From the sequence record PV261925.1: a DNA stretch of 64,000 nucleotides. One strand, written 5' to 3'. Positions 12,235 to 63,868 of this stretch are shown piece by piece. Each line of letters opens with the position of its first letter. The first letter of the stretch is position 1. The position numbers were made by a program, and so were the translations under genes. The notes under the pieces were generated by a model that was given only the letters and a program-made list of their open reading frames with translations, did not search any database and was not told where the DNA came from.

Positions 12235-12263
12235 ATTATACCAAGTATGTAGTCCTCTGTCAA
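12235..12263 (-). promoter_or_regulatory. Consensus sigma70-type early promoter
   Basis: TTGACA-N17-TATAAT. Confidence 0.85.
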
Positions 12264-12681: not shown

Positions 12682-12711
12682 ATTATAACATATAAGGCCA
12701 CAGAGTGTCAA
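12682..12711 (-). promoter_or_regulatory. Consensus sigma70-type promoter within an inverted repeat
   Basis: TTGACA-N18-TATAAT with TGn extension; GGCCACAG/CTGTGGCC inverted repeat flanks the -35 box. Confidence 0.8.
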
Positions 12712-12985: not shown

Positions 12986-13071
12986 GTGTTGAGTGTGTGG
13001 TGAGTAGTGTATACAAAGGGGGTTCATATAGGCCCCCTTATATAAGCCCTTCATATAGGGCCCTTATGTGA

Positions 13072-13224
13072 TCAGAACTCAAGCGGTTCGAGTGTAGGTT
13101 GGGCCTGGGGGATTTGCACCTGTTCGATGTTATCACTGTTCGTAGCGATAGCCTCAAGGATGTTCAGGATTTGAGCACCATTGTTACCCTTACGAAGCAG
13201 AGAGATCATCAGATTGCGGGACAT
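13072..13224 (-). CDS. Small hypothetical protein (50 aa)
   Basis: Manual translation MSRNLMISLLRKGNNGAQILNILEAIA...; AC-rich leader. Confidence 0.7.
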   Translation of the reverse strand: MSRNLMISLLRKGNNGAQILNILEAIATNSDNIEQVQIPQAQPTLEPLEF

Positions 13225-13295
13225 GTGTTTGTGTGAGTTAGTGTGTGAATTGTGATGAGTTTAATGACATCATCAGGTCATACAGTAAGTGTAAC

Positions 13296-13412
13296 TCAGA
13301 GCAGCGCTTTGCGTTTGCGATTGATCTGAGAGGGCAGTACAGTAACTGTTACTTTCTTGCCATTAGCTTTGAGTTCATCAATGGACTTCAGCAGTTGTTG
13401 ATAGTTGGTCAT
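13296..13412 (-). CDS. Small hypothetical protein (38 aa)
   Basis: MTNYQQLLKSIDELKANGKKVTVTVLPSQINRKRKALL; first gene after repeat copy 1. Confidence 0.6.
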   Translation of the reverse strand: MTNYQQLLKSIDELKANGKKVTVTVLPSQINRKRKALL

Positions 13413-13515
13413 GATGATTGCCGTGGTTACACTATAGCGGACCTTTGGAGGTGAGTAATTTTGAAGTCCTCAGAGTGTTACAGATAAGTGATACTGATTT
13501 GACACGATTGGGGGG

Positions 13516-13544
13516 TTGACAGAATAGGAAAGGCCTGATAGACT
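13516..13544 (+). promoter_or_regulatory. Plus-strand sigma70-type promoter with no downstream ORF
   Basis: TTGACA-N17-TAGACT. Confidence 0.65.
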
Positions 13545-13730
13545 ACGGTCTTAGACGACTATAAGATCAGGCATTTAGCAGGGGGTTTATAGGCACTCAT
13601 GAGATACTAGCGAGACCCTTTGTAGCACATTACAAGACACTTTCGCAAACATTCGCATACATTTATAAAAGGCTTTAATATACAAAAAAAGGCAAATAGC
13701 AGTATTTATTCACCTTTTTGGAGGGTAATT

Positions 13731-13901
13731 TCATTGTAACTTAGTGAAAGGATTACATGTTGTTCTTGTTACTGGATCACCTAATTGTTCTCTTGATGGG
13801 ATGTCATCATGTGGTCTATATGCACTGATGATTGGTGATAACAAGAGAGCTAATCTTTCATCCATTTGTGTATGTCTGAGGTGATAGATGTGATGATTCA
13901 T
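13731..13901 (-). CDS. Small hypothetical protein (56 aa)
   Basis: Manual translation MNHHIYHLRHTQMDERLALLLSPIISAYRPHDDIPSREQLGDP... Confidence 0.5.
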   Translation of the reverse strand: MNHHIYHLRHTQMDERLALLLSPIISAYRPHDDIPSREQLGDPVTRTTCNPFTKLQ

Positions 13902-14215
13902 ACAGTAGTCATCTCCAGATAATCAGCTTCAGTTTGTAACTTCTTACCATTCCAAATATAGATCATTGGATCATCACAAGCACCATAATCTTCAACCTCT
14001 CCATCATCATTAAAAGTTACATAATCACGCAGTGAAACTACAACCATTGCGGTCTGATTACCAAGATGATTGATACATGCTTCGAGAGTGTAATCATCAA
14101 GATCACCACAAGCTGGAGTCCATTGAATATCAAGATCTTCGTTGCGATCTTCCTCTACAATATAACGGTGCTCATCTACAGAAAAGTCAAAGGCTTCGAT
14201 AGTGGCGAATTCCAT
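13898..14215 (-). CDS. Hypothetical acidic protein
   Basis: ORF track; first gene after repeat copy 2. Confidence 0.75.
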   Translation of the reverse strand: MEFATIEAFDFSVDEHRYIVEEDRNEDLDIQWTPACGDLDDYTLEACINHLGNQTAMVVVSLRDYVTFNDDGEVEDYGACDDPMIYIWNGKKLQTEADYLEMTTV

Positions 14216-14270
14216 GTGATTGTGTGTCTTATACTATAGTGGACGTTTGAAGGTGAGTAACTTTGTAGAG

Positions 14271-14429
14271 TTATGATTGACTTACTTTATTGATAACAAC
14301 TCGATGAGCAGGGTATCTCGCTTCAACTAATTGTCTTATAAAGTCTCTATCAGAACGATCAGATTGAAGAGAAAACTCATGCCTTCTCCCCTTGTCATCA
14401 TTCCAATAACCAGTGCAATTGTAGATCAT
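14271..14429 (-). CDS. Small hypothetical protein (52 aa)
   Basis: MIYNCTGYWNDDKGRRHEFSLQSDRSDRDFIRQLVEARYPAHRVVINKVSQS; ATGA overlap with the upstream gene. Confidence 0.7.
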   Translation of the reverse strand: MIYNCTGYWNDDKGRRHEFSLQSDRSDRDFIRQLVEARYPAHRVVINKVSQS

Positions 14430-14680
14430 TTGAAGAAATTAAGACGGTGGAGTTCAGTATAAGCGAAACGACGCATATTGTCATCCTCTGTTGTATGATA
14501 CAAATTGATCATACGCTGACAATAATCAGACCTCTTTGCGATCGGTGTGATACTTTGGCGTGAAGTGTAGCCAAGGTCATTGTTACCATTGGTCCGTACT
14601 TTAGGCCGGCCAAAGTTACCAGTGACATTACCTGTTGTTCTCAGTTTAGGCTTGATCTTTGAGAGATTTGAATCAGTCAT
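14426..14680 (-). CDS. Hypothetical protein
   Basis: ORF track 14426-14701; KLRTTGNVTGNFGRPK. Confidence 0.7.
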   Translation of the reverse strand: MTDSNLSKIKPKLRTTGNVTGNFGRPKVRTNGNNDLGYTSRQSITPIAKRSDYCQRMINLYHTTEDDNMRRFAYTELHRLNFFK

Positions 14681-14810
14681 GAACTTCGGAGTTGTCATCA
14701 ATTACAGTTACAATTTGTCCGTCTTGAGTTAGAATTTCATACTGAGTTTGAAATGATGAAATATCAGCCTTTCCAACAATAATAGCAGTGGTGAGGATAA
14801 ATTCAATCAT
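14673..14810 (-). CDS. Small hypothetical protein with hydrophobic N-terminus (45 aa)
   Basis: MIEFILTTAIIVGKADISSFQTQYEILTQDGQIVTVIDDNSEVHD. Confidence 0.6.
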   Translation of the reverse strand: MIEFILTTAIIVGKADISSFQTQYEILTQDGQIVTVIDDNSEVHD

Positions 14811-14871
14811 TAGTTAAACCTTTATACAAAAAGAGTAATAAAAAAATGAGAAGAATAAAACCTATGATCGA

Positions 14872-15135
14872 TCATAACTCCCATAGCATTTCATTCATCT
14901 CATTCACATCAATGTTAGGATCATCCCAACGAACACCATCACCAGTCTTGCAGAGATGTTTACCAATTTGTCCATCCATCATACAGCGGACAAACTTATC
15001 CCAAGGAGTCTCCAAACCCTCACGGTAGGTTACACATGCCTTGGCTGTGTTGTAAAGAAACTCATCATTGCCGATCCAAAGAGCAGCGTTCCAAGTTTCA
15101 TAATTAGACCAACCGTTGTAGGTAGAATCAGACAT
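14872..15135 (-). CDS. Phage hypothetical protein (YNGWSNYETW family)
   Basis: YNGWSNYETWNAALWIGNDE motif. Confidence 0.8.
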   Translation of the reverse strand: MSDSTYNGWSNYETWNAALWIGNDEFLYNTAKACVTYREGLETPWDKFVRCMMDGQIGKHLCKTGDGVRWDDPNIDVNEMNEMLWEL

Positions 15136-15274
15136 AGTAGAAAAAGAAATAAAGGTGGTGATTAAGTGTGGTTCAGAGAAACAAGTCAGAGAAGCAATCT
15201 AGAAGAGAGAAGTCTGAGCGAGAAGTCTGAACCCTTACACCTATGTGGACATTTCGAGGTGAGTAATTCTGTGG

Positions 15275-15607
15275 TCACACAATCTTCACTTGTTCAATCT
15301 TCTCTGATTGGAAAGATTGATCCTCATACTCAACCTCAGGAGAGAATGCGACTCCAATCATACCAAGAATGATAAGATTGACAAAGTTGATCACAAAAAC
15401 ACTTGGCACACCTAATACAAACCAAGGTGTCCATTTGCCTTGAAGACCACGAAGAACTCCCCAACTTGCAAGAGCTCCAATAGGCCCAGCGGTCAATAAT
15501 CCTGCAGTGGCAGCAACACCTTGTTCAAAACCTGAGGCGGTCTGACGTACAATAACTTGTTGCTGATTGTTGGTGATAGGATCAGGAGTGGTGATAGTCA
15601 TAATCAA
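15275..15607 (-). CDS. Hypothetical membrane protein
   Basis: Hydrophobic segments AATAGLLTAGPIGALASW and FVLGVPSVFVINFVNLIILGMIGVAF. Confidence 0.75.
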   Translation of the reverse strand: MIMTITTPDPITNNQQQVIVRQTASGFEQGVAATAGLLTAGPIGALASWGVLRGLQGKWTPWFVLGVPSVFVINFVNLIILGMIGVAFSPEVEYEDQSFQSEKIEQVKIV

Positions 15608-15638
15608 AAAGTGTTAGTTTAAGAAGAAAAGTTAGAAA

Positions 15639-15980
15639 TCAGAAGTGTTGTGGACAGATACGCTTTGCAGCGTTCAATACATCAAGATCACCCATGCTGA
15701 TGGTCATCACATAGTTTTCACCATTGCGATTGACACCATTGTTTGCCATCAGTGTCAGAGTGTCGCAATGTTTAGATGCCCAATTCTCAATCTCTGAAAC
15801 TTCATATTCAGCCTCAGTTTGATCACCAATAGTTTCAACTGGTGCAGGAACTTGAGCGATTGGTGTATTGTTGGCGACTTCAGATCGCTGGATGTCTTTA
15901 CCCATATCCATAACAATCAGTCCAGAAGTCAATGCCGAGACAACACACATTGCGCCGACTTGAATGTAGTTGAATTTCAT
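15639..15980 (-). CDS. Hypothetical protein with N-terminal membrane anchor
   Basis: ORF track 15639-16076; likely start MKFNYIQ at 15980. Confidence 0.7.
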   Translation of the reverse strand: MKFNYIQVGAMCVVSALTSGLIVMDMGKDIQRSEVANNTPIAQVPAPVETIGDQTEAEYEVSEIENWASKHCDTLTLMANNGVNRNGENYVMTISMGDLDVLNAAKRICPQHF

Positions 15981-15984
15981 AAAA

Positions 15985-16143
15985 TCAGTTACCATTGAGA
16001 AAATCATGTAATGCTTCCAAATACTCTTCTTTGGTCTCAAATGTGCGACCATAGATTGTCTTTGGAAATTCGCCAAGTTCGGCGGGTTTGTTGACAGGAT
16101 CTTTGCCCTGTGACTTGATTTGATCAGTGTAAGTGTTTCTCAT
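15985..16143 (-). CDS. Small hypothetical protein (52 aa)
   Basis: MRNTYTDQIKSQGKDPVNKPAELGEFPKTIYGRTFETKEEYLEALHDFLNGN; ATG immediately follows repeat copy 4. Confidence 0.65.
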   Translation of the reverse strand: MRNTYTDQIKSQGKDPVNKPAELGEFPKTIYGRTFETKEEYLEALHDFLNGN

Positions 16144-16178
16144 ACTATAGTGGACCTTTCGAGGTGAGTAATTCTGTG

Positions 16179-16379
16179 TCAGTCTAATCTCTTGAAATGA
16201 ACTGAATTAAACTGACCTGATTTGTTCTCTAATGTAATCTTAGTGTACCATGGTTGAATGTCAACACTCTCGACAACATAGCGATGACCAACTATCAAAT
16301 GAGATGGATAATCACTCGATGCCCATAACAACTGTTCATGAGTTGCTCCCTTAAATTCTACTATATCACCTGACTGCAT
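16179..16379 (-). CDS. Hypothetical protein
   Basis: ORF track; stop abuts repeat copy 4. Confidence 0.7.
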   Translation of the reverse strand: MQSGDIVEFKGATHEQLLWASSDYPSHLIVGHRYVVESVDIQPWYTKITLENKSGQFNSVHFKRLD

Positions 16380-16575
16380 TTATCATATCCTCCCACACTT
16401 CTTCGCCCATCATATCACTAATCTCCTCTTGCAAGTCAGTTTCATCATAATCTTTCATATTTGTTTCTATTTGTTCTGCTGCCCACTGACATAGAGTCTT
16501 GAGATCCATACCATCAACGATTAGCCAGGCATAGTCATTCTTTAGGTTATCAAGTTGTTCAGGTGTGAGTGTCAT
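16366..16575 (-). CDS. Hypothetical protein
   Basis: Likely start MTLTPEQL at 16575. Confidence 0.7.
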   Translation of the reverse strand: MTLTPEQLDNLKNDYAWLIVDGMDLKTLCQWAAEQIETNMKDYDETDLQEEISDMMGEEVWEDMINAVR

Positions 16576-16605
16576 TGGATCAGTGTAATATGCGACAAAA
16601 GACAT

Positions 16606-16627
16606 AAAAAAAGAGGGTAAAACCCTC
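16606..16627 (-). terminator. Rho-independent terminator
   Basis: GAGGGT-TTT-ACCCTC followed by T7. Confidence 0.75.
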
Positions 16628-16970
16628 AAGCAAAAACATAACCAGAATGGAAATCTTCAACGTTGTAGACTTTACCAGTTACTGAAGATTCGCCAATGAA
16701 CTTGCGAACATACCAGAGAAAGTCTTTCTGGAAAACACCTTCACCAGCGATACAATACTCTTCGCAAAGTGCATTGAGTCGTGATTTAGTGGTGTTAGAT
16801 TGCCAACCACCGTCAAAGATAGTCAGGCTAGTGTCATCAACCAGAGCAATTTTATTGCCGTGGAGATAAACAGTGGAAACACCCATGTTGGTGACAACTT
16901 CAGTGTTTCCAGATTTCCAGTTTTTGTTGCCGTTGATGGCTTCAATCATCTGGGATTCAATCTTACGCAT
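16626..16970 (-). CDS. Hypothetical protein
   Basis: MRKIESQMIEAINGNKNWKSGNTEV...LHGNKIA...TTKSRLNAL; first gene after repeat copy 5. Confidence 0.8.
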   Translation of the reverse strand: MRKIESQMIEAINGNKNWKSGNTEVVTNMGVSTVYLHGNKIALVDDTSLTIFDGGWQSNTTKSRLNALCEEYCIAGEGVFQKDFLWYVRKFIGESSVTGKVYNVEDFHSGYVFA

Positions 16971-17019
16971 GTGGTTTAGTGGTTCTTACACTATAGTGGA
17001 CATTTGGAGGTGAGTAATT

Positions 17020-17487
17020 CTAGTCTCTGGTAATTAACCACCAAAGTATACCACCAACGACAATTAAGGGAATGGTAATATACCAATATGCAATGGCAAC
17101 AAATACTATACCAAGTGCAAGTAGACCTCCTATGTCACCCATTGACATACTACTTCCACCAGAGTTAGTGTTATTGTAATTGACCTGATGTGTCCCACTA
17201 GATGTAATTGGAGTGGGTGTAGATGATGCCTTGATTCTTTCCTCCTGGTCTCTAAATCGTTGGTTTTGTTCTTCTATCTTTCTCTTGCGTTCTTCTTCTC
17301 TTCTATTATGTTCTTCACGTCTTCCAATATCATAATTATCGACCAATATCGCTGATTTAACATTGGCGCCAGGATAACGTGACCGTGCAACATCAAGTGC
17401 AGCATTGCCACTATTCACACCATCAATCAAAATATCTTGGTTGCGGTAGTTACGATCGCCGTAAATGTGAATTTTGTAAGTAGGCAT
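17020..17487 (-). CDS. Hypothetical membrane protein (coiled coil plus C-terminal TM segments)
   Basis: ORF track; TAG directly abuts repeat copy 5. Confidence 0.75.
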   Translation of the reverse strand: MPTYKIHIYGDRNYRNQDILIDGVNSGNAALDVARSRYPGANVKSAILVDNYDIGRREEHNRREEERKRKIEEQNQRFRDQEERIKASSTPTPITSSGTHQVNYNNTNSGGSSMSMGDIGGLLALGIVFVAIAYWYITIPLIVVGGILWWLITRD

Positions 17488-17515
17488 GAGATTGAAGAAT
17501 AAAATACTTTAACAA

Positions 17516-17626
17516 GTGGCCTTACATTGTATCAAGGTAACCACACCAAAACATGATACAAATGCCACACATTATGGGCCTTACATGAGTGTTGTAACCA
17601 CCACAGAAATTACACTCAATGCCCAT
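17516..17626 (-). ncRNA. Tandem pair of structured hairpins (GUAAG internal-loop scaffold), candidate ncRNA
   Basis: Unit B 17574-17626: ATGGGC-AT-TGAGTGT-19nt-ACACTCA-TGTAAG-GCCCAT. Unit A 17516-17568: GTGGC-AT-TTGTATCA-19nt-TGATACAA-TGTAAG-GCCAC. Stem sequences differ but pairing is kept. Confidence 0.65.
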
Positions 17627-17629
17627 CAA

Positions 17630-17812
17630 TCAAAAAGGATTAGTCCATTTGTGGTGTTGTTGTTTCGTAATCCTACCATCATCAAGTAAACTATCAACCA
17701 CATTTAGGAAGACAGCCCACTTCATGTCACGAGTGAAAGTAATACCTTCCTCTTTGCAATGAGTGTTCACAGTATTACGAACAACGCGTTGAACTTCAGT
17801 TTTTGTCATCAT
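17630..17812 (-). CDS. Hypothetical protein
   Basis: ORF track; LLDDGRITKQQH motif. Confidence 0.7.
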   Translation of the reverse strand: MMTKTEVQRVVRNTVNTHCKEEGITFTRDMKWAVFLNVVDSLLDDGRITKQQHHKWTNPF

Positions 17813-17866
17813 TTTTGTCCTTGTTTGGTTTAGTTGGTTTCGTCCAATAATCGCGGTAAATTGACA

Positions 17867-18019
17867 TCAATTAGTGGGAAAGTTACGACAGACGGCATCA
17901 CAAAGCATACGAATTACATCATCTTTATACTCAACTTCACCAAAGTTAGATTCAATAATACAATCAATGTCCTCCATGAGTTGTTCACGAGCGGTCAACA
18001 TTTCGAGTTGGTCCATCAT
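17867..18019 (-). CDS. Small acidic hypothetical protein (50 aa)
   Basis: MMDQLEMLTAREQLMEDIDCIIESNFGEVEYKDDVIRMLCDAVCRNFPTN. Confidence 0.65.
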   Translation of the reverse strand: MMDQLEMLTAREQLMEDIDCIIESNFGEVEYKDDVIRMLCDAVCRNFPTN

Positions 18020-18174
18020 TTAGAAAGAAGAAAACGACGTGCTTCGTAGGCTTGAAATTGTGAATTGAATGTGGCAATCTTGGTCATATCTTCACGCCAA
18101 TATAATGCCCATTTGTGTGACCCTATCACACCTTTAGCGATGATAGGGTTATCAATACCAAGTGGATAAGTCAT
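18016..18174 (-). CDS. Small hypothetical protein (52 aa)
   Basis: MTYPLGIDNPIIAKGVIGSHKWALYWRED...; ATGA overlaps on both sides. Confidence 0.65.
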   Translation of the reverse strand: MTYPLGIDNPIIAKGVIGSHKWALYWREDMTKIATFNSQFQAYEARRFLLSK

Positions 18175-18332
18175 TCTTCAATAACAGATTGGATTACAAA
18201 TTGTGGTTGATTTCGATTACAAGTTGCAATTGCTTCCTCTTTACTAGAAGCAATGTAACCTAGACAATCTCTCATTGTCCAACCATTAGCACGATGATGT
18301 TCACCGTAGATCAGAAACTTAGATTCTTTCAT
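18171..18332 (-). CDS. Hypothetical protein
   Basis: Likely start MKESKF at 18332. Confidence 0.65.
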   Translation of the reverse strand: MKESKFLIYGEHHRANGWTMRDCLGYIASSKEEAIATCNRNQPQFVIQSVIEE

Positions 18333-18336
18333 GTTA

Positions 18337-18564
18337 TCAACCTCCGTAGACTTCTTCAGCCATAGGTGTATCACTCATGCGATCGAGGTGATCCCAAAGT
18401 GTGTTTTTTTCACCAAACATTTCTTGGAAGAGATCAAGATCTTGACGATCATATTGATCTTTAACAATCCAAATCTCTTGTTCAATCCATGCAAGTTCTG
18501 CACGAGCTTTATCTAGTTTCTTACGAAGTTCGTAAAGCTTTTGGTTTCTTTCTGTGAGTGTCAT
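18337..18564 (-). CDS. Hypothetical coiled-coil protein
   Basis: ORF track; first gene after repeat copy 6. Confidence 0.7.
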   Translation of the reverse strand: MTLTERNQKLYELRKKLDKARAELAWIEQEIWIVKDQYDRQDLDLFQEMFGEKNTLWDHLDRMSDTPMAEEVYGG

Positions 18565-18614
18565 AATGATTCAGTGGTTACACTATAGTGGACATTTCGA
18601 GGTGAGTAATTCTG

Positions 18615-19205
18615 TCAGCCCAACAATACCTGAGGAAAGTATGGAGTCAGGTCAGAATCTACAATCTTATGTTCACAACTCACAAATTTCTTTCGTGATA
18701 CATTCTTGACATAGATCAGGTGGTTAATGTCAATATCTTTGTAATCTTGTGGTCCACGTTTACGAATAAGACCAAAGGCTTCGTTCTCTTCGCGAGTGGA
18801 AACAACGACCTTTGAAAGTTTATCAATGTCTGTCAAAAAATGAGTGATAAGATCATAAGAACGATCTTCCACAAACTTATCATAGTGATATGCAAATATG
18901 AACTTTGAACCACTACGAACACCGCCGAAGTGTTCTTTAGTCAAACTGTGTCCACCTTTGACCTTCATATCAATCACACTGGACAAAGTTTTGTCAGGAT
19001 ATTCACTCCACTTAATAAAAGCTTGAGGAGTGAGGAGAGCACCAGTGTCATCAATTTTATGAGAACCTGCCCAACAAATACCACCAGAAAGATCTTCTAC
19101 AACCTTGAACATGGTCTCACGGGTGTAGATATTGACCTGCTCATCTGTCAGAGACATGATGAGTTTGAGTTGATTAGTTAGGTATCTTTTAGTGGTGGCA
19201 GTCAT
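18615..19205 (-). CDS. Hypothetical protein (196 aa), single-gene cassette between repeat copies 7 and 6
   Basis: ORF track. Confidence 0.8.
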   Translation of the reverse strand: MTATTKRYLTNQLKLIMSLTDEQVNIYTRETMFKVVEDLSGGICWAGSHKIDDTGALLTPQAFIKWSEYPDKTLSSVIDMKVKGGHSLTKEHFGGVRSGSKFIFAYHYDKFVEDRSYDLITHFLTDIDKLSKVVVSTREENEAFGLIRKRGPQDYKDIDINHLIYVKNVSRKKFVSCEHKIVDSDLTPYFPQVLLG

Positions 19206-19250
19206 CGGTTTAATGTGGTTACTTAAGTGGACATTTAGAGGTGAGTAATT

Positions 19251-19454
19251 CTATTTGAGCTCAATTCGGTCAATCAAGACCATACCAAGGTCAAAATATA
19301 GATCATCATCAATGTCACCAAGCTTTTCACGGAGAGCATCACCAACCATGTCGGTCATCATCTCCATATAACGCTCATCTTCATAGATTTGATTGATAAT
19401 ATCCTCCTTCAATGCGTCGGCGAGTTTGGATACACATTTTGCAGAAAGTGCCAT
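19251..19454 (-). CDS. Hypothetical acidic protein
   Basis: ORF track; TAG abuts repeat copy 7. Confidence 0.75.
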   Translation of the reverse strand: MALSAKCVSKLADALKEDIINQIYEDERYMEMMTDMVGDALREKLGDIDDDLYFDLGMVLIDRIELK

Positions 19455-19455
19455 G

Positions 19456-19536
19456 TCAGTTGTTAGTGAGAATGTTTATGATTGTGATGAATAATGCACC
19501 ACACATAACGTAGTAGATGAAACGAAAAATAACCAT
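19456..19536 (-). CDS. Putative small membrane peptide (26 aa)
   Basis: MVIFRFIYYVMCGALFITIINILTNN; TAATG coupling with the upstream gene. Confidence 0.45.
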   Translation of the reverse strand: MVIFRFIYYVMCGALFITIINILTNN

Positions 19537-19865
19537 TATCGTAAGTAAAGATAACCACCTGCCCAATCAGCACGTTCATAACATTGTTCGCGTGATTCAA
19601 TCCTCAGAAGATTGTAACGAACACCTTTGGCTGGTGCTTTGAATGATGCAGGTTTGTAAACATCACCAGTCTTCTTATCAACAAAGGCATGAACACTGCG
19701 GGAGTTACCATCAGTCTCCATGATCAGTTTGTGATACTTACGACCAGATTCAATGTAAAACTTGTAACCATCAGACTTGTAATTGTTACGGCGAAGGAAA
19801 TCTTCCATCAACACACCGCAAAGAATGTTAGCGTGTTTCTCAACAATTTGTGTGGGAGTGATCAT
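19536..19865 (-). CDS. Hypothetical protein
   Basis: GRKYHKLI...SVHAFVDKKTGDVYKPASFKAPAKGVRYNL motif. Confidence 0.8.
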   Translation of the reverse strand: MITPTQIVEKHANILCGVLMEDFLRRNNYKSDGYKFYIESGRKYHKLIMETDGNSRSVHAFVDKKTGDVYKPASFKAPAKGVRYNLLRIESREQCYERADWAGGYLYLR

Positions 19866-19882
19866 AGCTTTGTGTGGTTACA

Positions 19883-20026
19883 CTATTGTGGACCTTTGGA
19901 GGTGAGTAATTCTGAAGACCGACGATTGATGGCGGCTACTTCTACACTACTACAAGGAATCAGAACCTTTTGATTTACCCACACAATCTTGCGAGTGTCA
20001 ATATCTGATGCGATGTTGTAAGTCAT
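19883..20026 (-). CDS. Small ORF (47 aa) reading through repeat copy 8
   Basis: MTYNIASDIDTRKIVWVNQKVLIPCSSVEVAAINRRSSELLTSKGPQ; ATGA overlap with the upstream gene. Confidence 0.5.
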   Translation of the reverse strand: MTYNIASDIDTRKIVWVNQKVLIPCSSVEVAAINRRSSELLTSKGPQ

Positions 20027-20343
20027 TCAAGTTCCTCAATAGGGTTGGCGTAAAGATCATTCTCTGTGGTCACATCAGTGAACACATCTTCATCATCATC
20101 AGCAAATAACAGATATAAAATCTCATCATTGTCCTTGACATTCCACTCTTGATAGAGAGAAATAATGTCGCCAGATACTTGTTCTTTCTTTTTATTCTTG
20201 TTTAATGATTTACCTAGTTTCTTAATACGTTTTGCATATGCTTCTTGCTGATCATTGGCAAGATATTCAACTCTATCAAGATTGAAGACAAACTTGTTAC
20301 CTTCAATCTCAAAGGTTTCGGAATTTGCGGTATCAAAATTCAT
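20023..20343 (-). CDS. Hypothetical protein
   Basis: ORF track. Confidence 0.7.
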   Translation of the reverse strand: MNFDTANSETFEIEGNKFVFNLDRVEYLANDQQEAYAKRIKKLGKSLNKNKKKEQVSGDIISLYQEWNVKDNDEILYLLFADDDEDVFTDVTTENDLYANPIEELE

Positions 20344-20388
20344 AATAATAATGTGGTTAATTCAATTGTATCTTATAAACTACCGATG

Positions 20389-20592
20389 TCAATCGGTAGT
20401 GGTTGCCTTACCCACATTAGATGGGCCTTTCCAAACCAAACCATCTTCTTCCCATTTACTGATAAAGGCACGACGAAGCATCATCAGTTCATCATATCGT
20501 GATTGTTGAGATGAAGTATAGTTGAAGTTTTGTACCCTCCAAGTTTTACGAAGTTCTTGAAGTTCACGGATGATTTGAGAAGAATTGTTCAT
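20389..20592 (-). CDS. Hypothetical protein
   Basis: ORF track. Confidence 0.7.
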   Translation of the reverse strand: MNNSSQIIRELQELRKTWRVQNFNYTSSQQSRYDELMMLRRAFISKWEEDGLVWKGPSNVGKATTTD

Positions 20593-20633
20593 GATGTTGT
20601 TCTTAGATTAAGTAAAATAAGTTTAGGTTTATG

Positions 20634-20891
20634 TCATTCAATACGAGTGATTACAACGTAATTAGAATCATCATCAAATTTAGGGGGATGGATCGTCCTC
20701 GTCACTTTGTAGCCCGTTTTCTTCAATGCACTAGGAATATCTGGGCCCCTGTAGTCTTCACAATAATCATCACAGCGAAGAATGAATGACATTCCAATAT
20801 CTAGTTGTTGCCATGGGTGTTTCTGTTTACGACCCTTGCTTGGAGAATGAAATAGTTCTTCAATTTGATGGGGGGTGTAGATTTCGGACAT
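20634..20891 (-). CDS. Hypothetical protein (K-H/Y-P-W/F..L.IG.SF type, possibly DNA-binding)
   Basis: GRKQKHPWQQLDIGMSF motif; first gene after repeat copy 9. Confidence 0.7.
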   Translation of the reverse strand: MSEIYTPHQIEELFHSPSKGRKQKHPWQQLDIGMSFILRCDDYCEDYRGPDIPSALKKTGYKVTRTIHPPKFDDDSNYVVITRIE

Positions 20892-20935
20892 GATTAGACG
20901 TGATTACAATAGAGTGGACGTTTGGAGGTGAGTAA

Positions 20936-21487
20936 TTATGAACCGAGACAGAATTGTCTGAGTTTCCGAGTAATAGAGGGTGCAGTGATGTCTTCCGACA
21001 CAACATATGCCTCTAATTCTTCCAGAATAGTATCTTCATGAAGACCCTTGGCTTTCAGTCGCGAACGTAACTGAGCAAGACGTTCTTCATCATAAGATGG
21101 AGACAAAGACAAGAATTTAGCAAGTTCTTCTTCATTGAACATCGTTGTAGTTTTACCATCAGCAATATAACCACTTGCACAATCTTGGATTACATGATGT
21201 GCCTCATGTCGCAGTGTGTTGTAGTCATTCTCGGTCCATTTGTATTGTTTATTTGAACCTGGAATCATCTTATCTTGACAGATAACTAACATTCCAGAAT
21301 AAGGATAGTAAATACCATCCATTTTCTTTCTGTCATTACAATGATTGAGATGATTGACCAATGTAACTACACCAAGGTCTTGCAAAGTGTTCCACAATTC
21401 ATTATGGTCATCATGAATGTCAGCCTTGGCAATACCAGGAGTGAGAACTGCGGTTGCTGCGAGAAGAGAAAGAAATAGTTTTTTCAT
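20936..21487 (-). CDS. Secreted HExxH zinc-metallopeptidase-like protein
   Basis: Signal peptide MKKLFLSLLAATAVLTPGIAKA; LRHEAHHVIQDC. Confidence 0.6.
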   Translation of the reverse strand: MKKLFLSLLAATAVLTPGIAKADIHDDHNELWNTLQDLGVVTLVNHLNHCNDRKKMDGIYYPYSGMLVICQDKMIPGSNKQYKWTENDYNTLRHEAHHVIQDCASGYIADGKTTTMFNEEELAKFLSLSPSYDEERLAQLRSRLKAKGLHEDTILEELEAYVVSEDITAPSITRKLRQFCLGS

Positions 21488-21492
21488 GTTAA

Positions 21493-21744
21493 TCAGAAGT
21501 CAGGTCCAAGAATTTCCATAAGATCAGCAGGATCAGTACTGCCGAGATAAGTCTCAGTAAAGAGAATTGCTAGTTCTCTACTACCAAACTCAATCTCTAC
21601 ATTATCCCAGATCCTGTCATTATATACTTTGACAGTGATAGGTTGAACACCCGATTCTTCAATTGTTTCAGAAATATTATAATAAATGTCATCACCATCA
21701 CTACAATCAAAGTCATAAGTGACTTTTACAGTTGACATAATCAT
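21493..21744 (-). CDS. Hypothetical acidic protein
   Basis: Likely start MIMSTVKV at 21744. Confidence 0.65.
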   Translation of the reverse strand: MIMSTVKVTYDFDCSDGDDIYYNISETIEESGVQPITVKVYNDRIWDNVEIEFGSRELAILFTETYLGSTDPADLMEILGPDF

Positions 21745-21941
21745 TTTGATTCCTCCAGAGTAATAGTACGATACTGATTGACAATGGTCTCTAGTTCCAT
21801 AACACAATGTTGCATTGTGGCACGAGAGTAACCAGTAGCATAAGGATAACCCTGATCAGGGTTATTCAACGCATCATGTGATACATTCACTCCATCTTGA
21901 AGACTTTCGATGATTGTGATTAGTTTGGTGTCGATGTTCAT
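21741..21941 (-). CDS. Hypothetical protein
   Basis: Likely start MNIDTKL at 21941; GYPYATGYSR motif. Confidence 0.7.
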   Translation of the reverse strand: MNIDTKLITIIESLQDGVNVSHDALNNPDQGYPYATGYSRATMQHCVMELETIVNQYRTITLEESK

Positions 21942-21951
21942 GATAGGTAAT

Positions 21952-21990
21952 AAAAAACCGCTGTAGGGGATCAGAGACACCTTACAGCGG
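21952..21990 (-). terminator. Rho-independent terminator
   Basis: CCGCTGTA...TACAGCGG followed by T6. Confidence 0.75.
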
Positions 21991-21997
21991 AGAATAG

Positions 21998-22207
21998 TCA
22001 GACAGTGGTCTTAGGACCAAACTCACGTTGATAAGAATCTTTCACATACTCAACAGTTTGTTGAATGAAAGGCTTGACATAATCAACGAGTTGTTTTACA
22101 TCTTCAATGAGCTTGTTAGTCTCATACTGATGAATCTCCCAACGTACTTTGATGTCGGCAAGATACTGTTGACGAGTAATAAGAACTTGAGGAGTGGTTT
22201 GAGTCAT
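21998..22207 (-). CDS. Hypothetical protein
   Basis: ORF track; first gene after repeat copy 10. Confidence 0.75.
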   Translation of the reverse strand: MTQTTPQVLITRQQYLADIKVRWEIHQYETNKLIEDVKQLVDYVKPFIQQTVEYVKDSYQREFGPKTTV

Positions 22208-22257
22208 AGAAGTGTGGTCTCTACACTATAGGGGACATTTGGAGGTGAGTAATTCTG

Positions 22258-22461
22258 TCACCTCTTCTTTTTCTTGAGTTTGTTAATCAATGTCATCGCA
22301 GATTGTCTGTTACGACATACTTTAACCACCACACCATTGTGAACAACCACAAGTTTAGTTGTTGAACCAACCAGTGGAATTGCAGCCAGATAACCATCAC
22401 CCACAATGATAGGTAATGTTCCTGGTTTACAATCAAGGATGTGTGAGTTTGTGTAATGCAT
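22258..22461 (-). CDS. Hypothetical protein
   Basis: ORF track; stop abuts repeat copy 10. Confidence 0.7.
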   Translation of the reverse strand: MHYTNSHILDCKPGTLPIIVGDGYLAAIPLVGSTTKLVVVHNGVVVKVCRNRQSAMTLINKLKKKKR

Positions 22462-22915
22462 TTAGATATACTTGGTGGGCTTCTTCAATAGTATCATATA
22501 TCCCCAAATATTCAGTTTTACCTTCATGTGCAATACGAGAGTAATATCTACCACTATGTGCGGTCGATACACCTCTGACACCTAATTCATTATTGTTTCT
22601 TACTTTAGTATTGTAATTATTCTGTGTTTGGTCAACTGCTCGTAAGTTTTCTATTCTGTTATTACTTTTGTTTCTATCAATATGGTCTATTTGTTGTTCC
22701 TGCTCTAAGTCACCATAATGATACTGATACACCAATCTGTGCTTTAAATATATCTTCTTATCCACAGATATTTGATAATATCCAGTGTGATGTTTAGTCC
22801 CTGCAATAGAACCTGCAGGTTGTCTTCCCCTACATTTTTTGTAGATAAGTTCACCATCTTGGTAGGCGAAAAGTTCCTGTAACCTACCCTGTGAAGGGAG
22901 TTGATAATTTCTCAT
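22433..22915 (-). CDS. HNH homing endonuclease with C-terminal AP2 DNA-binding domain
   Basis: YLKHRLVY...IDHIDRNKSNNRIENLR (HNH_3) and GVRGVS..GRYYSRI..YLGIYDTIEEA (AP2). Confidence 0.9.
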   Translation of the reverse strand: MRNYQLPSQGRLQELFAYQDGELIYKKCRGRQPAGSIAGTKHHTGYYQISVDKKIYLKHRLVYQYHYGDLEQEQQIDHIDRNKSNNRIENLRAVDQTQNNYNTKVRNNNELGVRGVSTAHSGRYYSRIAHEGKTEYLGIYDTIEEAHQVYLNALHKLTHP

Positions 22916-23010
22916 GTGTGTCTTGGCGATGACATTACTATTTAGAATTTTATCATAATGTGGGACTTACGTCAATTTACCCGCCAAGACACACTGACTG
23001 CCCACATTAT
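22916..23010 (-). promoter_or_regulatory. Structured leader (GUAAG scaffold hairpin E1 + late promoter + loop-complementary RBS region) of the HNH gene
   Basis: ATAATGTGGG/CCCACATTAT stem; GTCA/TGAC inner stem; loop GTGTGTCTTGGCG (22982-22994) is the exact complement of the 13 nt before the ATG (22916-22928); TAAATA at 22939-22944. Confidence 0.75.
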
Positions 23011-24188
23011 TATTTACGAGTTACACTGTCAAGCATTTCTCCCTTCTCAAACACAATATCAACACAACGCTGGAGAGACTTTTGAGTGGAAAGTCCTACC
23101 TGATTGTAGACAGGGACGCAGAGCATACCGTAGGTTTTAGTAGAAGAACCAACCCTAATGACACGTCCGACAGTTTGAAGAAGCTCAATACTGTCCATGT
23201 TACGAAGGAAGATAACCGCCTCAAGTTCAGACACGTTGATGCCTTCAGACAGAATAGAACGGTGAAGGACAACAAATTTCTTTGACTTGTCACGACCCCA
23301 TGCATTCAGAGTATTGAAAAACTCTTCACGAGATACTTTCTGACCATCGATAACAGCACCAGTCTTGGCGGTGATATACAGATAAGAGTAACCACGTTCT
23401 GTCAACTGATCAGCGAAATCAGTCATGAACAGGTTCTGTAACTGTCGTGTGGTCTTAACACAAACCAGAATCTTCTTGATGTCAATCTGGTCAATAGATG
23501 CGAGGACATTGTTACCCTCAAGATGAGGAGTGAGAGACTTTTTGTCAATCTTATCCATCTCAATCACCTTGACCTTAGGTGGAAGAATGTAACCATTCTG
23601 AACCAGATCAGGTGCAGACACACGTGCAATCACTTGACCATAAGTCTCAGTCCAGTTCATGCCTGGTTTCTTCACAGTCACACTGGTTTTACGAGTTGCA
23701 GTGAAGTAGTAACAACGATCTGCATGCTTACTGAAATACTCAGTGGGACCGTAGAAGTTACGTTGAACAGAGTTATGTGCCTCGTCAAAGTAAATCGTAT
23801 CTACAGCAATACCAGACTCTTGAACACGATGAAGAGAGTGATATGTGGTGAAGATAATAACGTGTTCACGCATAGTGTGACACATATCAACAAATAGTTT
23901 GATACGTTCAGACTTAGTGGTACTGAAATGTTGTGTCTCTCCACTATGAACATGGAGAACATTTGCATTGGTGATATGTTCCAGATACTCTGATGACAGT
24001 TGTTCTGCCAACAGAATACGAGGAGCGACAACAACAATAGTGCGAGGAACTTTTATCTCAAATCGTCTCACTGCGTCCATGATAGCGATAAGAGTCTTGC
24101 CGCCACCAGTAGGAACAATGATTTGACCGATAGAATTATTACGAAGAGCGTAAACAGCGTCCTGTTGATGAGGGCGGAGTTTGATCAT
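23010..24188 (-). CDS. Superfamily 2 (DEAH-type) helicase
   Basis: LRPHQ, PTGGGKT (motif I), DEAH (II), TAT (III), LSEGINV (V), QTVGRVIR (VI). Confidence 0.92.
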   Translation of the reverse strand: MIKLRPHQQDAVYALRNNSIGQIIVPTGGGKTLIAIMDAVRRFEIKVPRTIVVVAPRILLAEQLSSEYLEHITNANVLHVHSGETQHFSTTKSERIKLFVDMCHTMREHVIIFTTYHSLHRVQESGIAVDTIYFDEAHNSVQRNFYGPTEYFSKHADRCYYFTATRKTSVTVKKPGMNWTETYGQVIARVSAPDLVQNGYILPPKVKVIEMDKIDKKSLTPHLEGNNVLASIDQIDIKKILVCVKTTRQLQNLFMTDFADQLTERGYSYLYITAKTGAVIDGQKVSREEFFNTLNAWGRDKSKKFVVLHRSILSEGINVSELEAVIFLRNMDSIELLQTVGRVIRVGSSTKTYGMLCVPVYNQVGLSTQKSLQRCVDIVFEKGEMLDSVTRK

Positions 24189-24231
24189 TTATGTGGTGTA
24201 TGTAATAGTGTGGACGTTTGGAGGTGAGTAA

Positions 24232-25113
24232 TTATGAACCGTATCCATTATGGAAGTTAGCATATGCAAACTCGGTACGATCTACCAGTTTAACACATCC
24301 ATAGGTGTTAGAGTGGAAAACATATCCTTCACCACTACATTTCTTACCATTAGGAAGATAAGATTGTGGTGCGTCGGTGACAATCAGACTGTCCATAATA
24401 TCCAGTTTGATTTCCATCACAAACTGATACAGATTAGTGAGATGTTGACAACCAAGAATGTCAGTCAGGGTTGCGTCATCAATATACTGACCAGATTTGA
24501 TGAGTGCGTTGATAGCAGTCTTAGCCTTAGCAGCTTCCTTATCAGTCAGAAACTTGATACCCTTAGGGTTAATCTTAGGGACAGATCCTTGGGGAGGAAT
24601 ACGATCAACAGAAGGTTGCACCCACTTGACCATAGTGGTGTCTTCAAATGTTTCCATCAAAGGTGAACACACATTCTTCCACATTTCCTCGTGAACGTCA
24701 ACAGCTGTGTGAGGAGCGATGACAAGTTTCTGGTCAATTGCTTCGTCAAAGACATACGTCAGAGTGTTCTGAGTAAACACATCAGTACGACCGAAACCAA
24801 GCCAATCACCCCAGTAAATCTTCTCGGTACGAGGAAGATACTTGAAACAATGAGACAGAATATCTACAACTTCGATTTGATGACCAAAATGAGTGAAGAT
24901 GTCGTCAATAGAGTAACAAAGACGAACTTTCTTCTTGTTAAATGCAGCTTTTGTACACACAAAAAACTTACCATTGGCAGGGTTAGTACCCCAAACCAAC
25001 GACATTCCATCCATCTTCATAGAGATGTGTGCGTGATCATAAAGAAGATCAAACACTGACATATCTCCAGTCAAAATGCAGTCTTCGGGATGTTCCAGGT
25101 GAGTTTGTGTCAT
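24232..25113 (-). CDS. Hypothetical protein with ligase-like covalent nucleotidyltransferase motifs
   Basis: SMKMDG (KxDG), EGYVF and VKLVDR in the expected order; THLEHPED N-terminus. Confidence 0.6.
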   Translation of the reverse strand: MTQTHLEHPEDCILTGDMSVFDLLYDHAHISMKMDGMSLVWGTNPANGKFFVCTKAAFNKKKVRLCYSIDDIFTHFGHQIEVVDILSHCFKYLPRTEKIYWGDWLGFGRTDVFTQNTLTYVFDEAIDQKLVIAPHTAVDVHEEMWKNVCSPLMETFEDTTMVKWVQPSVDRIPPQGSVPKINPKGIKFLTDKEAAKAKTAINALIKSGQYIDDATLTDILGCQHLTNLYQFVMEIKLDIMDSLIVTDAPQSYLPNGKKCSGEGYVFHSNTYGCVKLVDRTEFAYANFHNGYGS

Positions 25114-25164
25114 AATATGGTGTGGTCTCGTACTATAGATGACCTTTCAAGGTGAGTAATTCTG

Positions 25165-25617
25165 TCAGATCACATGTATGCTCTCTATATGTGACACTGG
25201 TGAAGATTTACAGTAGAACTGTATATTTTTGTTGTATTTGGTTCTTCTTACAATTCTCTTCAATGCGTTGTAGTCGGTGTCATTATCTCTGGCCCATTTA
25301 GATAATTGATGACATTCAACCACATCACCGTTTCTAAACCTAATTCTATATGTCTTTGCATTAGGGTTGTTATTCAACCCTTGTTCTACAAACTGTTTCT
25401 TATCTGTAAAAACATTGATACGTCCTAACACCCAACCGTCAGGTATTTCGTCTTCAAATACCATCTTATGTTCAAGTCCGTTATTTACCCATACAGACCC
25501 ACGAACATACGACACACGGGCGTCATACACAGGTGTTAGTTCTTCTTCAGTCAGTGTAATTACTGACGGTCCATCACATTCAAACGCGCGATTAAGACCT
25601 TCACAGTTCCAGTCCAT
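25165..25617 (-). CDS. Homing-endonuclease-derived DNA-binding protein, no evident catalytic domain
   Basis: WVNNG..HK..IPDGWVLGR and NPNAKTYRI..LSKWARDN resemble endonuclease C-terminal DNA-binding modules; no GIY-YIG or HNH motif seen. Confidence 0.6.
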   Translation of the reverse strand: MDWNCEGLNRAFECDGPSVITLTEEELTPVYDARVSYVRGSVWVNNGLEHKMVFEDEIPDGWVLGRINVFTDKKQFVEQGLNNNPNAKTYRIRFRNGDVVECHQLSKWARDNDTDYNALKRIVRRTKYNKNIQFYCKSSPVSHIESIHVI

Positions 25618-27110: not shown

Positions 27111-27139
27111 ACTATAGTCTATTTAGGAGCAGGTGTCAA
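27111..27139 (-). promoter_or_regulatory. Sigma70-type early promoter
   Basis: TTGACA-N17-TATAGT. Confidence 0.8.
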
Positions 27140-29485: not shown

Positions 29486-29519
29486 TTACTCCTGTAATTT
29501 TTCGTAAACTATAGTTGAT

Positions 29520-29684
29520 TTATACAGAAATGTCAAGACATTTCATTTGACGTTCAAATTCATATTTGAGTTTATACAATTTACTTTGAATATAACTTTC
29601 ATACTCCATCTCCTCGGTTAATGCAAGAAGATTTTCCACTTGAGCATGTGCAATCACAAGTTTTTGTTTCGGGTCGAGTTTCAT
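29520..29684 (-). CDS. Hypothetical protein
   Basis: Likely start MKLDPKQK at 29684. Confidence 0.6.
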   Translation of the reverse strand: MKLDPKQKLVIAHAQVENLLALTEEMEYESYIQSKLYKLKYEFERQMKCLDISV

Positions 29685-30172: not shown

Positions 30173-30218
30173 GGTCTTAATAACTTAAAGGATCCTCATC
30201 TTCCAGGACAAGCCTATT

Positions 30219-30557
30219 CTAGTCCTGATTGTTGTACTTGTCAAGTAACAAGTTTTCTGATAGATTAGCACATATCTCACATCGTGGAATACCCATCAAA
30301 TGTTGGTACATGTGATAACACTCATGGAGTAATGTCTTAGTGTGTTCATCACCCCTTAGATTTTCATCGATTTGAATGACAAACTCATTGTCTTGTTCTC
30401 TCATACACCAACCATCAACACCTTCATCAGATAGGTCCATATAGACCACTGTAAGGTCTACACCATGGTCAGACAGATATTCTGTCATGAACCACTCTAG
30501 AAGGGGTTTACAAGACGGTACAGGTGTAAATGACGGGACAACTTCAATAGAATGCAT
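30219..30557 (-). CDS. HExxH metallopeptidase-like protein
   Basis: GWCMRE..EFVIQID..TLLHECYHMYQH. Confidence 0.65.
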   Translation of the reverse strand: MHSIEVVPSFTPVPSCKPLLEWFMTEYLSDHGVDLTVVYMDLSDEGVDGWCMREQDNEFVIQIDENLRGDEHTKTLLHECYHMYQHLMGIPRCEICANLSENLLLDKYNNQD

Positions 30558-63720: not shown

Positions 63721-63777
63721 GTATGTTTCGTATTAGGTAGTATTCTAACAACGAATAATAAAACACTCAATTCATAA

Positions 63778-63862
63778 TAGGAACGGGGAGACTTGAACTC
63801 CCACGGACATAATGCCCAACTGATTTTAAGTCAGGTGCGTCTACCGATTCCGCCACGCTCCC
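63778..63862 (-). tRNA. trnL: tRNA-Leu, anticodon UAA
   Basis: GGGAGCG/CGTTCCT acceptor stem, TGGCGGAATCGGTAGACG D-arm, CTTAAAA anticodon loop, long variable arm, GTTCAAGTC T-loop; CCA not encoded. Confidence 0.95.
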
Positions 63863-63868
63863 AAAAAA

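Follow-up and report, generated by a model that had tools for sequence, protein, structure and literature searches.

The middle promoters of phage T4 are built from a MotA box at -30 and a -10 box, and are read through sigma appropriation by MotA and AsiA. For the T4-like cyanophages Syn9 and P-TIM40, Doron and co-workers are said to have described a novel element, which the early genes of Syn9 reportedly use, the middle genes having host-like promoters. Cyanophages were reported to lack MotA and AsiA (PMC5780444). Another kind of short regulatory repeat, the PeSL (promoter-early stem-loop) element, is known from the phages RB49/phi1, T4/PST and KVP40/nt-1 (Arbiol 2010, PMC2839356; Comeau 2014, PMC4122927), and a high density of PeSLs was reported to be absent from S-PM2 (PMC4503421). 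Here, we analyze a 12-copy repeat in a 64-kb stretch of DNA (hereafter the window), which is the final stretch of the record of Synechococcus phage RB11-B (PV261925.1, 210,127 bp, host Synechococcus sp. MW02); window positions 13000-25500 are 100% identical to that genome. Judged from its sequence, the repeat most plausibly represents a promoter class, peculiar to a cyanomyovirus lineage, that departs from the canonical form.

RB11-B is a T4-like cyanomyovirus whose nearest relatives, RN05-S, S-B43 and S-B05, all come from the same host, MW02. Every gene between 10 and 63 kb of the window lies on the minus strand. The repeat region is enclosed in a 20-kb run of small genes (approximately 10.3-30.5 kb), which is bounded by baseplate and PurM genes on one side and by tail-fibre genes on the other, and which is syntenic with the corresponding regions of Syn9, Bellamy, SynMITS9220M01 and S-8S29. 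Within it, 12 copies of an element of approximately 42 nucleotides (nt) are spread over 13.4-25.2 kb, all on the minus, that is, the gene strand, with 639-1979 nt between neighbours (Table 1). Exactly these 12 sites are matched by a 24-nt consensus with at most three mismatches, while 100 shuffles gave no match at all. A profile built from the copies gives them scores of 36-53 bits, whereas the best other site of the window reaches 4.8 bits, and the profile finds no further copy in the other 146 kb of the RB11-B genome. Every copy occupies a junction of two genes, with a stop codon on its upstream side and the next ATG on its downstream side; the stop codon overlaps the core or lies no more than 3 nt away from it in eight of the 12, and in a wider set of copies its end falls at -3, 0 or +2 with respect to the core (88 of 153). 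An earlier reading of the same letters (hereafter the original prediction), which had described 12 co-oriented copies some 0.6-2 kb apart, usually abutting or overlapping a stop codon, was therefore accurate in this respect. It had also held that the repeats split an accessory region into gene cassettes. Units between repeats do exist, but they comprise one to six genes each and conserved genes are among them. Most products of the array have no known function, the exceptions being a DEAD/ResIII helicase, a DUF6267 protein, Kyano_Gp96 and an HNH endonuclease, and several cassette families are common to nearly all of the 39 loci that we compared. Since the helicase, the DUF6267 protein and Kyano_Gp96 are conserved cyanophage genes, the region is not purely accessory, but mixes conserved with variable genes.

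Among 50,697 phage records searched with blastn, the element occurs only in the four MW02 phages (RB11-B, RN05-S, S-B43 and S-B05), and in the three relatives, too, its copies form co-oriented arrays. A pattern scan of IMG/VR added 38 stretches from 35 environmental viral contigs, in which the profile finds 187 copies, always co-oriented within a stretch and reaching up to 13 in 10 kb. Moreover, SynMITS9220M01, a phage of another Synechococcus host strain, carries 11 copies of a diverged form, AAT(G/A)TTACTCACC(T/C)CTAAAGTGTCCCTATAGT, in the syntenic region. Hence, the element belongs to a whole group of marine cyanomyoviruses as a trait of their lineage, and is not peculiar to one genome. A 20-mer pattern of the element, scanned against the genomes of 185,579 bacterial and archaeal species, gave 26 scattered single matches in unrelated taxa, a number in line with a rough chance expectation of ~70, and none in cyanobacteria. 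The same 20-mer pattern recurs 12-36 nt from the ends of many contigs in two metagenome-assembled genomes of Anaerolineales (L052, L053, L060, L064, L065, L073, L074 and others), which suggests that a repeated element of another kind interrupts these assemblies. In S-B05, an annotated 102-nt repeat_region (L004 14400-14501) is found exactly where the array stops and opposite-strand structural genes begin; a partial record of earlier date, 40.5 kb long, ends at this point, and the site may mark a join in the assembly.

On the gene strand, the consensus begins with (C/T)A(G/A), which often holds the preceding stop codon, and continues through AATTACTCACCTCnAAAnGTCCAC, TATAGT and GTAAC to a short leader and the ATG. 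We drew the statistics of this anatomy from 187 unique copies, with positions numbered on the profile. T11, T15, A17, C18, C19, A24 and G27 are invariant in this set, and conservation is higher in the blocks TTACTCACCT and AAAnGTC than in the -10 box, of which T35, A36 and T38 are conserved at 95-98% and A34 at only 70%. Two mid-element positions, 22 and 26, are free to vary. The last codons of the preceding gene contain a weak A-A-T signal, ~15 nt upstream of the core, and the palindrome CACTATAGTG is not retained from copy to copy. Of 182 unique copies taken from many genomes, 159 are followed, 12-23 nt past the -10 box, by an ATG that opens a reading frame of at least 30 amino acids (aa). 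The leaders are composed of 35% A, 29% C and 11.5% G, and a Shine-Dalgarno-like tetramer is present in only six of the 182. A scan for TTGACA-N16-18-TATAAT left every window copy below 9 of 12 matches (0/12), the position of the -35 hexamer reading ATTACT/TTACTC. In all these points, namely a TATAGT box without TTGACA, a spacer more conserved than a promoter needs and a short AC-rich leader before the next ATG, the analysis agrees with the original prediction. The core is kept at orthologous junctions of diverged genomes, where the flanking coding sequences and the leaders diverge freely; the retention of the invariant positions under these circumstances points to purifying selection rather than to recent duplication.

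The annotated ATG sits directly after TATAGT in SynMITS9220M01 and at window copy 4, which would argue against a -10 box. For the one SynMITS9220M01 gene compared, the product of which is a 75-aa protein 91% identical in RB11-B, the comparison of homologues places the true start 15 nt past TATAGT, and a possible objection to TATAGT as a -10 box is thereby removed. The 3' end of the element, CACTATAG, has the same letters as the T7 promoter at positions -7 to +1; we treated this as a coincidence, because no single-subunit RNA polymerase is annotated in the genome. A separate observation concerns DNA modification. In the DNA of S-B43, GC dinucleotides bear a glycyl-carboxymethyl modification on their C (PMC12783734). 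The repeat core is free of GC dinucleotides in 11 of the 12 window copies, so that it would stay unmodified under a modification of the S-B43 type; this may be due to chance, with ~1.6 GC dinucleotides expected per copy by our estimate.

Taken together, the position, the orientation, the fixed distance to the ATG, the conserved -10 box and the purifying selection make a promoter the most likely function of the repeat. We assign a probability of roughly 0.7 to the reading that each copy is a promoter of a distinct, lineage-specific class, which would drive a short operon of one to six small genes in this ORFan-rich region. The proposed element would span about -38 to +1, with the constrained upstream block AATTACTCACCTCnAAAnGTCC at about -36 to -15 replacing the sigma-70 -35 hexamer, with TATAGT or the overlapping TAGTGT as the -10 box and with GTAAC as a conserved start region. 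The predicted transcripts would have a very short (~8-15 nt), A/C-rich leader without a Shine-Dalgarno sequence. Terminator-like sites are no more frequent than expected (10 vs 10.7) and none is found at a repeat; given the lack of terminators between units, downstream units would also be read from the promoters upstream of them. The original prediction had likewise taken each copy for a promoter. The anatomy and the conservation across many genomes support this claim well, the activity itself being deduced from sequence features.

The block at about -34 to -16 is more constrained than the -10 box, which suggests that a specific protein reads it; such a contact could be made by a host sigma factor or activator, or by a phage factor. 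The variation among copies bears on this question. Non-orthologous copies of the same genome differ on average at 3.55 of the 24 core positions, as compared with 4.32 for non-orthologous copies of different genomes and 3.79 for orthologous copies of different genomes, and the within-minus-between difference was reached by none of 1000 permutations. Particular variants are shared within loci: AGTTAGTAACC (or AGTTAGTTACC) is found in five of six copies of L024, AATAGCTCACC in five of seven copies of L011, and AATTGACC is common to L023, L027 and L032, while all copies of SynMITS9220M01 show a 1-nt shift of GTCC. The excess of within-genome similarity falls on the otherwise constrained positions 10, 14, 16 and 28, and not on the freely variable ones, a distribution consistent with co-evolution with a reader protein. 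The shift of GTCC in SynMITS9220M01 would be spread more easily by gene conversion, and both processes may act on the copies. Tentatively, the block at about -34 to -16 could be the binding site of a dedicated specificity factor that defines a separate temporal gene class in this clade of T4-like cyanophages, although we hold this to be doubtful as it stands. Such a factor might be a counterpart of MotA/AsiA in function, a protein delivered with the virion, or one particular sigma factor or activator of the host. A factor co-evolving with its sites would explain why all copies of a genome switch jointly to variants such as TTAGTAACC or AAAGTGTCCC. The suggestion that a phage factor reads the TTACTCACC block, made in the original prediction, is consistent with the conservation of the block above that of the -10 box and with the co-variation within genomes, but the putative factor may also be encoded by the host.

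T4 middle promoters offer a first comparison. Like them, the repeat joins a -10 box of the TAnnnT form, without a -35 hexamer, to a conserved box centred near -30. The sequences of the boxes are unrelated, as no MotA box, (a/t)(a/t)(a/t)TGCTT(t/c)A, is centred at -30, and the TGCTT of T4 has its counterpart in TTACTCACCT; no MotA or AsiA gene is annotated in the RB11-B genome. To our knowledge, none of the cyanobacterial NtcA, HLR1/RpaB, Pho box and LexA sites, nor a spacing of the extracytoplasmic function (ECF) type, fits the element. The novel element of Syn9 stands closer. Both it and the repeat belong to the same virus family and to a syntenic small-gene region beside the helicase, both are non-sigma-70, and in both genomes sigma-70-like promoters serve another gene class. 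The Syn9 and Bellamy regions bear a GTGTCCAC box that matches the 3' half of the repeat, with SynMITS9220M01 showing an intermediate form. The 5' halves, in contrast, differ (TGTGCCA in Syn9, TTACTCACCT in RB11-B), the box is located ~28 nt upstream of the -10 in Syn9 whereas it abuts the -10 in RB11-B, and Syn9 has a few irregular copies and no regular array; the leader motif AGAGTCAAAGG of Syn9 and Bellamy is absent from the window. The repeat may be a lineage variant of the Syn9 early-gene element. By analogy with Syn9, the class would have a timing of its own, probably early and linked to host takeover. Given the differences in the 5' half, in the distance to the -10 and in the regularity of the array, this temporal class is an assignment by resemblance.

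Several observations speak against the promoter reading or against parts of it. The register of the -10 box is ambiguous, the A at -11 being conserved at only 70% in the TATAGT register, and copy 3 combines a poor -10 box with a leader of 110 nt. The concerted signal amounts to a few independent lineage events (in L024, in L011, in the L023/L027/L032 group and in SynMITS9220M01), and gene conversion without any factor could be its source. As the exact motif was found in no cyanobacterial genome, there is no host regulon that would point to a host factor. Both the temporal class and any identity with the Syn9 element depend on what was reportedly found for Syn9 and on a partial resemblance of motifs.

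PeSLs, to which the original prediction had likened the repeat, provide an apt functional parallel. Both are short, conserved regulatory repeats, clustered and co-oriented with small ORFan genes, dense in the hyperplastic region of T4-like genomes, and often near indels between close relatives. Even the spacing ATTACT-N17-TATAGT resembles the T4/PST form of PeSL, TTTACW-N17-TAYWAT. The structural traits, however, differ. Instead of the sigma-70-like promoter of PeSLs, the repeat has a TATAGT -10 with a -35 region unlike that of sigma-70, and the would-be spacer is its most conserved part. There is no upstream stem-loop or terminator either: the stop codon abuts the core, and folds of six copies with their flanks gave no stable stem in the element (z-scores from +1.5 to -1.5). 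Several indels and replacements between RB11-B, RN05-S and S-B43 stop at edges of the repeat; breakpoints are not enriched there over other gene junctions. The repeat, which occurs in a cyanomyovirus, would work like the promoter half of a PeSL and lacks the two structural traits that define one. Sites nearer to true PeSLs, with a hairpin and a sigma-70 promoter, stand separately at the edges of the array. We found six canonical TTGACA/TATAAT sites on the gene strand around and within the array (Table 1), several of which bear an inverted repeat bracketing the -35. It is this canonical set, and not the 12-copy repeat, that resembles PeSLs. The presence of such sites, with their hairpins and with Shine-Dalgarno leaders on the three upstream ones, beside the repeat indicates that the genome has two distinct classes of expression signal.

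Table 1. Repeat copies and canonical promoter sites of the RB11-B window (window coordinates; aa, amino acids; ORF, open reading frame).
Feature	Coordinates	Core start	Strand	Remarks
Repeat copy 1	13423..13464	13437	-	Core 13437-13460; followed by an unannotated 38-aa ORF, 13296-13412
Repeat copy 2	14225..14266	14239	-	AGTTAC variant; precedes gene 13898-14215
Repeat copy 3	15231..15272	15245	-	Degenerate -10, ATAGGT; leader ~110 nt; RN05-S/S-B43 homology stops at upstream edge, 15273
Repeat copy 4	16136..16177	16150	-	Matches consensus and profile
Repeat copy 5	16982..17023	16996	-	Stop codon TAG abuts core; RN05-S/S-B43 homology stops at 17021
Repeat copy 6	18574..18615	18588	-	Precedes 75-aa gene, 91% identical to SynMITS9220M01 homologue
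Repeat copy 7	19213..19254	19227	-	-10 variant TTAAGT
Repeat copy 8	19874..19915	19888	-	Read through by annotated 47-aa upstream ORF
Repeat copy 9	20900..20941	20914	-	Stop codon TAA overlaps core; S-B43 homology resumes at 20901; 85-aa gene directly downstream, absent in RN05-S
Repeat copy 10	22217..22258	22231	-	Matches consensus
Repeat copy 11	24196..24237	24210	-	Precedes helicase gene 23010-24188
Repeat copy 12	25124..25165	25138	-	Most divergent, 3 mismatches; precedes DUF6267 gene; RN05-S homology stops at 25168
Perfect TTGACA-N17/18-TATAAT promoter	12682-12711		-	Just downstream of array; inverted repeat around -35
Perfect TTGACA-N17/18-TATAAT promoter	12235-12263		-	Just downstream of array; only a 4-bp inverted repeat
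11/12 sigma-70-type site	20365-20392		-	Inside array
11/12 sigma-70-type site	27111-27139		-	Upstream of array; GGAG/AGGA Shine-Dalgarno leader
11/12 sigma-70-type site	29508-29536		-	Upstream of array; GGAG/AGGA Shine-Dalgarno leader
11/12 sigma-70-type site	30216-30244		-	Upstream of array; GGAG/AGGA Shine-Dalgarno leader

The likeness to PeSLs raises the alternative that the copies are promoters which act mainly as portable patches of homology for the excision, insertion and swapping of cassettes, possibly through mini-circles, and which would drive the plasticity of the region by way of phage recombination enzymes. This would accord with the circles mediated by PeSLs that were documented in RB49 and phi1 (PMC2839356) and with a number of our observations. 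The blocks homologous to RN05-S and S-B43 break off at the upstream edges of copies 3, 5 and 12 (Table 1) and also at 20889/20901, the downstream edge of copy 9, and in S-B43 everything between copies 5 and 9 is replaced by 3.5 kb of opposite-strand tail-fibre-like genes. Across the 39 loci, the points where homology begins accumulate at the 5' edge of the repeat and those where it breaks off at the 3' edge, some junctions combine an identical repeat and downstream gene with unrelated upstream cassettes, and whole cassettes are present, absent or occasionally moved. The concerted evolution, too, shows that sequence is exchanged between copies.

The controlled comparison of junctions, however, makes this alternative an unlikely one. 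Junctions that hold a repeat have 2.05 breakpoints per 100 nt and gene junctions that hold none have 1.87, as against 0.64 in the array background; since both types of junction stand at about three times the background, the enrichment is a property of gene boundaries in general. Where a repeat separates two genes, their adjacency is lost in 50% of comparisons, as against 40% at other junctions, and the number of distinct successor families is 3.2 against 3.6 (p = 0.86), the crude gene calls on which these two figures are based adding noise to both classes of junction. The pile-up at the repeat edges is in part an anchor effect, as the repeat is a conserved island in diverged DNA. The deletion that concerns the 85-aa gene beside copy 9 used a 6-nt microhomology at the ATG and not the repeat. 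Two other differences are explained by free-standing homing endonuclease genes: an HNH gene (22433-22915) is present only in RB11-B, whereas RN05-S and S-B43 alone have an opposite-strand endonuclease gene, at the place that corresponds to window 14672 (L002 2557-3060; L003 5404-5907). At 17022-17511, a divergent homologue (34% identity) with a repeat of its own replaces the RB11-B gene, and one boundary of this swap is outside any repeat. Two apparent cassette deletions turned out to be the loss or gain of a repeat within a conserved run of genes. Cassette order is largely collinear across the 39 loci, with few translocations. Repeats do exchange sequence on an evolutionary time scale, as a side effect and not as their function, and nothing indicates that gene shuffling favours them. 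An invariant gene order among relatives, which would have refuted the original prediction by its own account, is not seen, as gene content varies, but its view of each copy as a recombination point gains no specific support from these densities.

The replacement in S-B43 has features of its own. Opposite-strand tail-fibre-like and carbohydrate-binding genes (L003 8357-11463) stand there in place of four cassettes, and a repeat copy (L003 11440-11463) points into the 3' end of a convergent gene. This copy is either an orphan promoter, which would make antisense RNA, or the mark of an assembly or inversion problem.

With integron arrays, to which the original prediction had also compared the locus, the repeat array shares co-oriented units of small genes separated by a repeated site. 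It differs from them in that the folds show no stable stem that could serve as an attC hairpin, and in that every unit has its own -10-containing element in place of one common promoter for promoterless cassettes. No IntI-type integrase is listed among the RB11-B product names, which we read for all but ~10 kb of the record, no profile search having been made. Given also the largely collinear order of the cassettes, the integron analogy was an overreach.

We also considered that the repeat might act at the RNA level, as a processing site or a translational control element in a polycistronic mRNA that is read through. The lack of terminators between units would place the element in upstream transcripts, it is always located just 5' of a cistron, its most invariant block is TCACCT, and the invariant CACCUCC resembles the anti-Shine-Dalgarno end of 16S rRNA. 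Against this, the folds revealed no conserved secondary structure (the z-scores given above), a search of the whole window with Rfam yielded only a tRNA and no match at the element, and the downstream genes have no Shine-Dalgarno sequence that a mimic of its complement could mask. A -10-like box at a fixed distance both from the block and from the ATG is, moreover, what a promoter predicts. Hence, we regard a signal in RNA as very improbable. The confinement of many near-identical copies to one region might suggest a selfish or neutral repeat that does not contribute to expression, either a miniature mobile element or the remnant of a serial duplication. This is scarcely credible in view of the strict placement and orientation relative to stop and start codons, the lack of terminal inverted repeats and target duplications, and the invariant positions kept across diverged genomes with diverging flanks.

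A few further features of the window deserve mention. The largest intergenic gap of the array (17488-17629, minus strand) holds two tandem units of ~57 nt (GGTTAC ... ATGTAAGGCC) and is 100% identical in RB11-B, RN05-S and S-B05 despite a swapped neighbour gene. Its fold has an energy of -37.7 kcal/mol (z = -1.8), and the gap may encode a small RNA or serve as a regulatory site. Upstream of copy 1, 270 nt (13461-13730) are without an annotated gene, and RN05-S has an extra ORF near this place. Toward the end of the window, both ARAGORN and Rfam identify a tRNA-Leu (anticodon TAA) at 63777-63863 on the minus strand; the tRNA annotated in GenBank is 223 nt long and extends as far as the record itself does, apparently through an error of annotation.

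The controlled analysis of breakpoints carries a caution, namely that indels beside a repeated promoter do not show that the repeat mediates them. The element itself is sharply defined and environmentally widespread, and it would serve as a sequence tag for pulling the probable host-takeover genes of this phage clade from metagenomes. It could also be of use as a compact promoter part for marine Synechococcus. For T4-like cyanophages, which reportedly lack MotA and AsiA, it offers a handle on gene timing. The most interesting point is which protein would read the conserved block; since the recognition block varies by lineage, it could be used as a bait for that protein.

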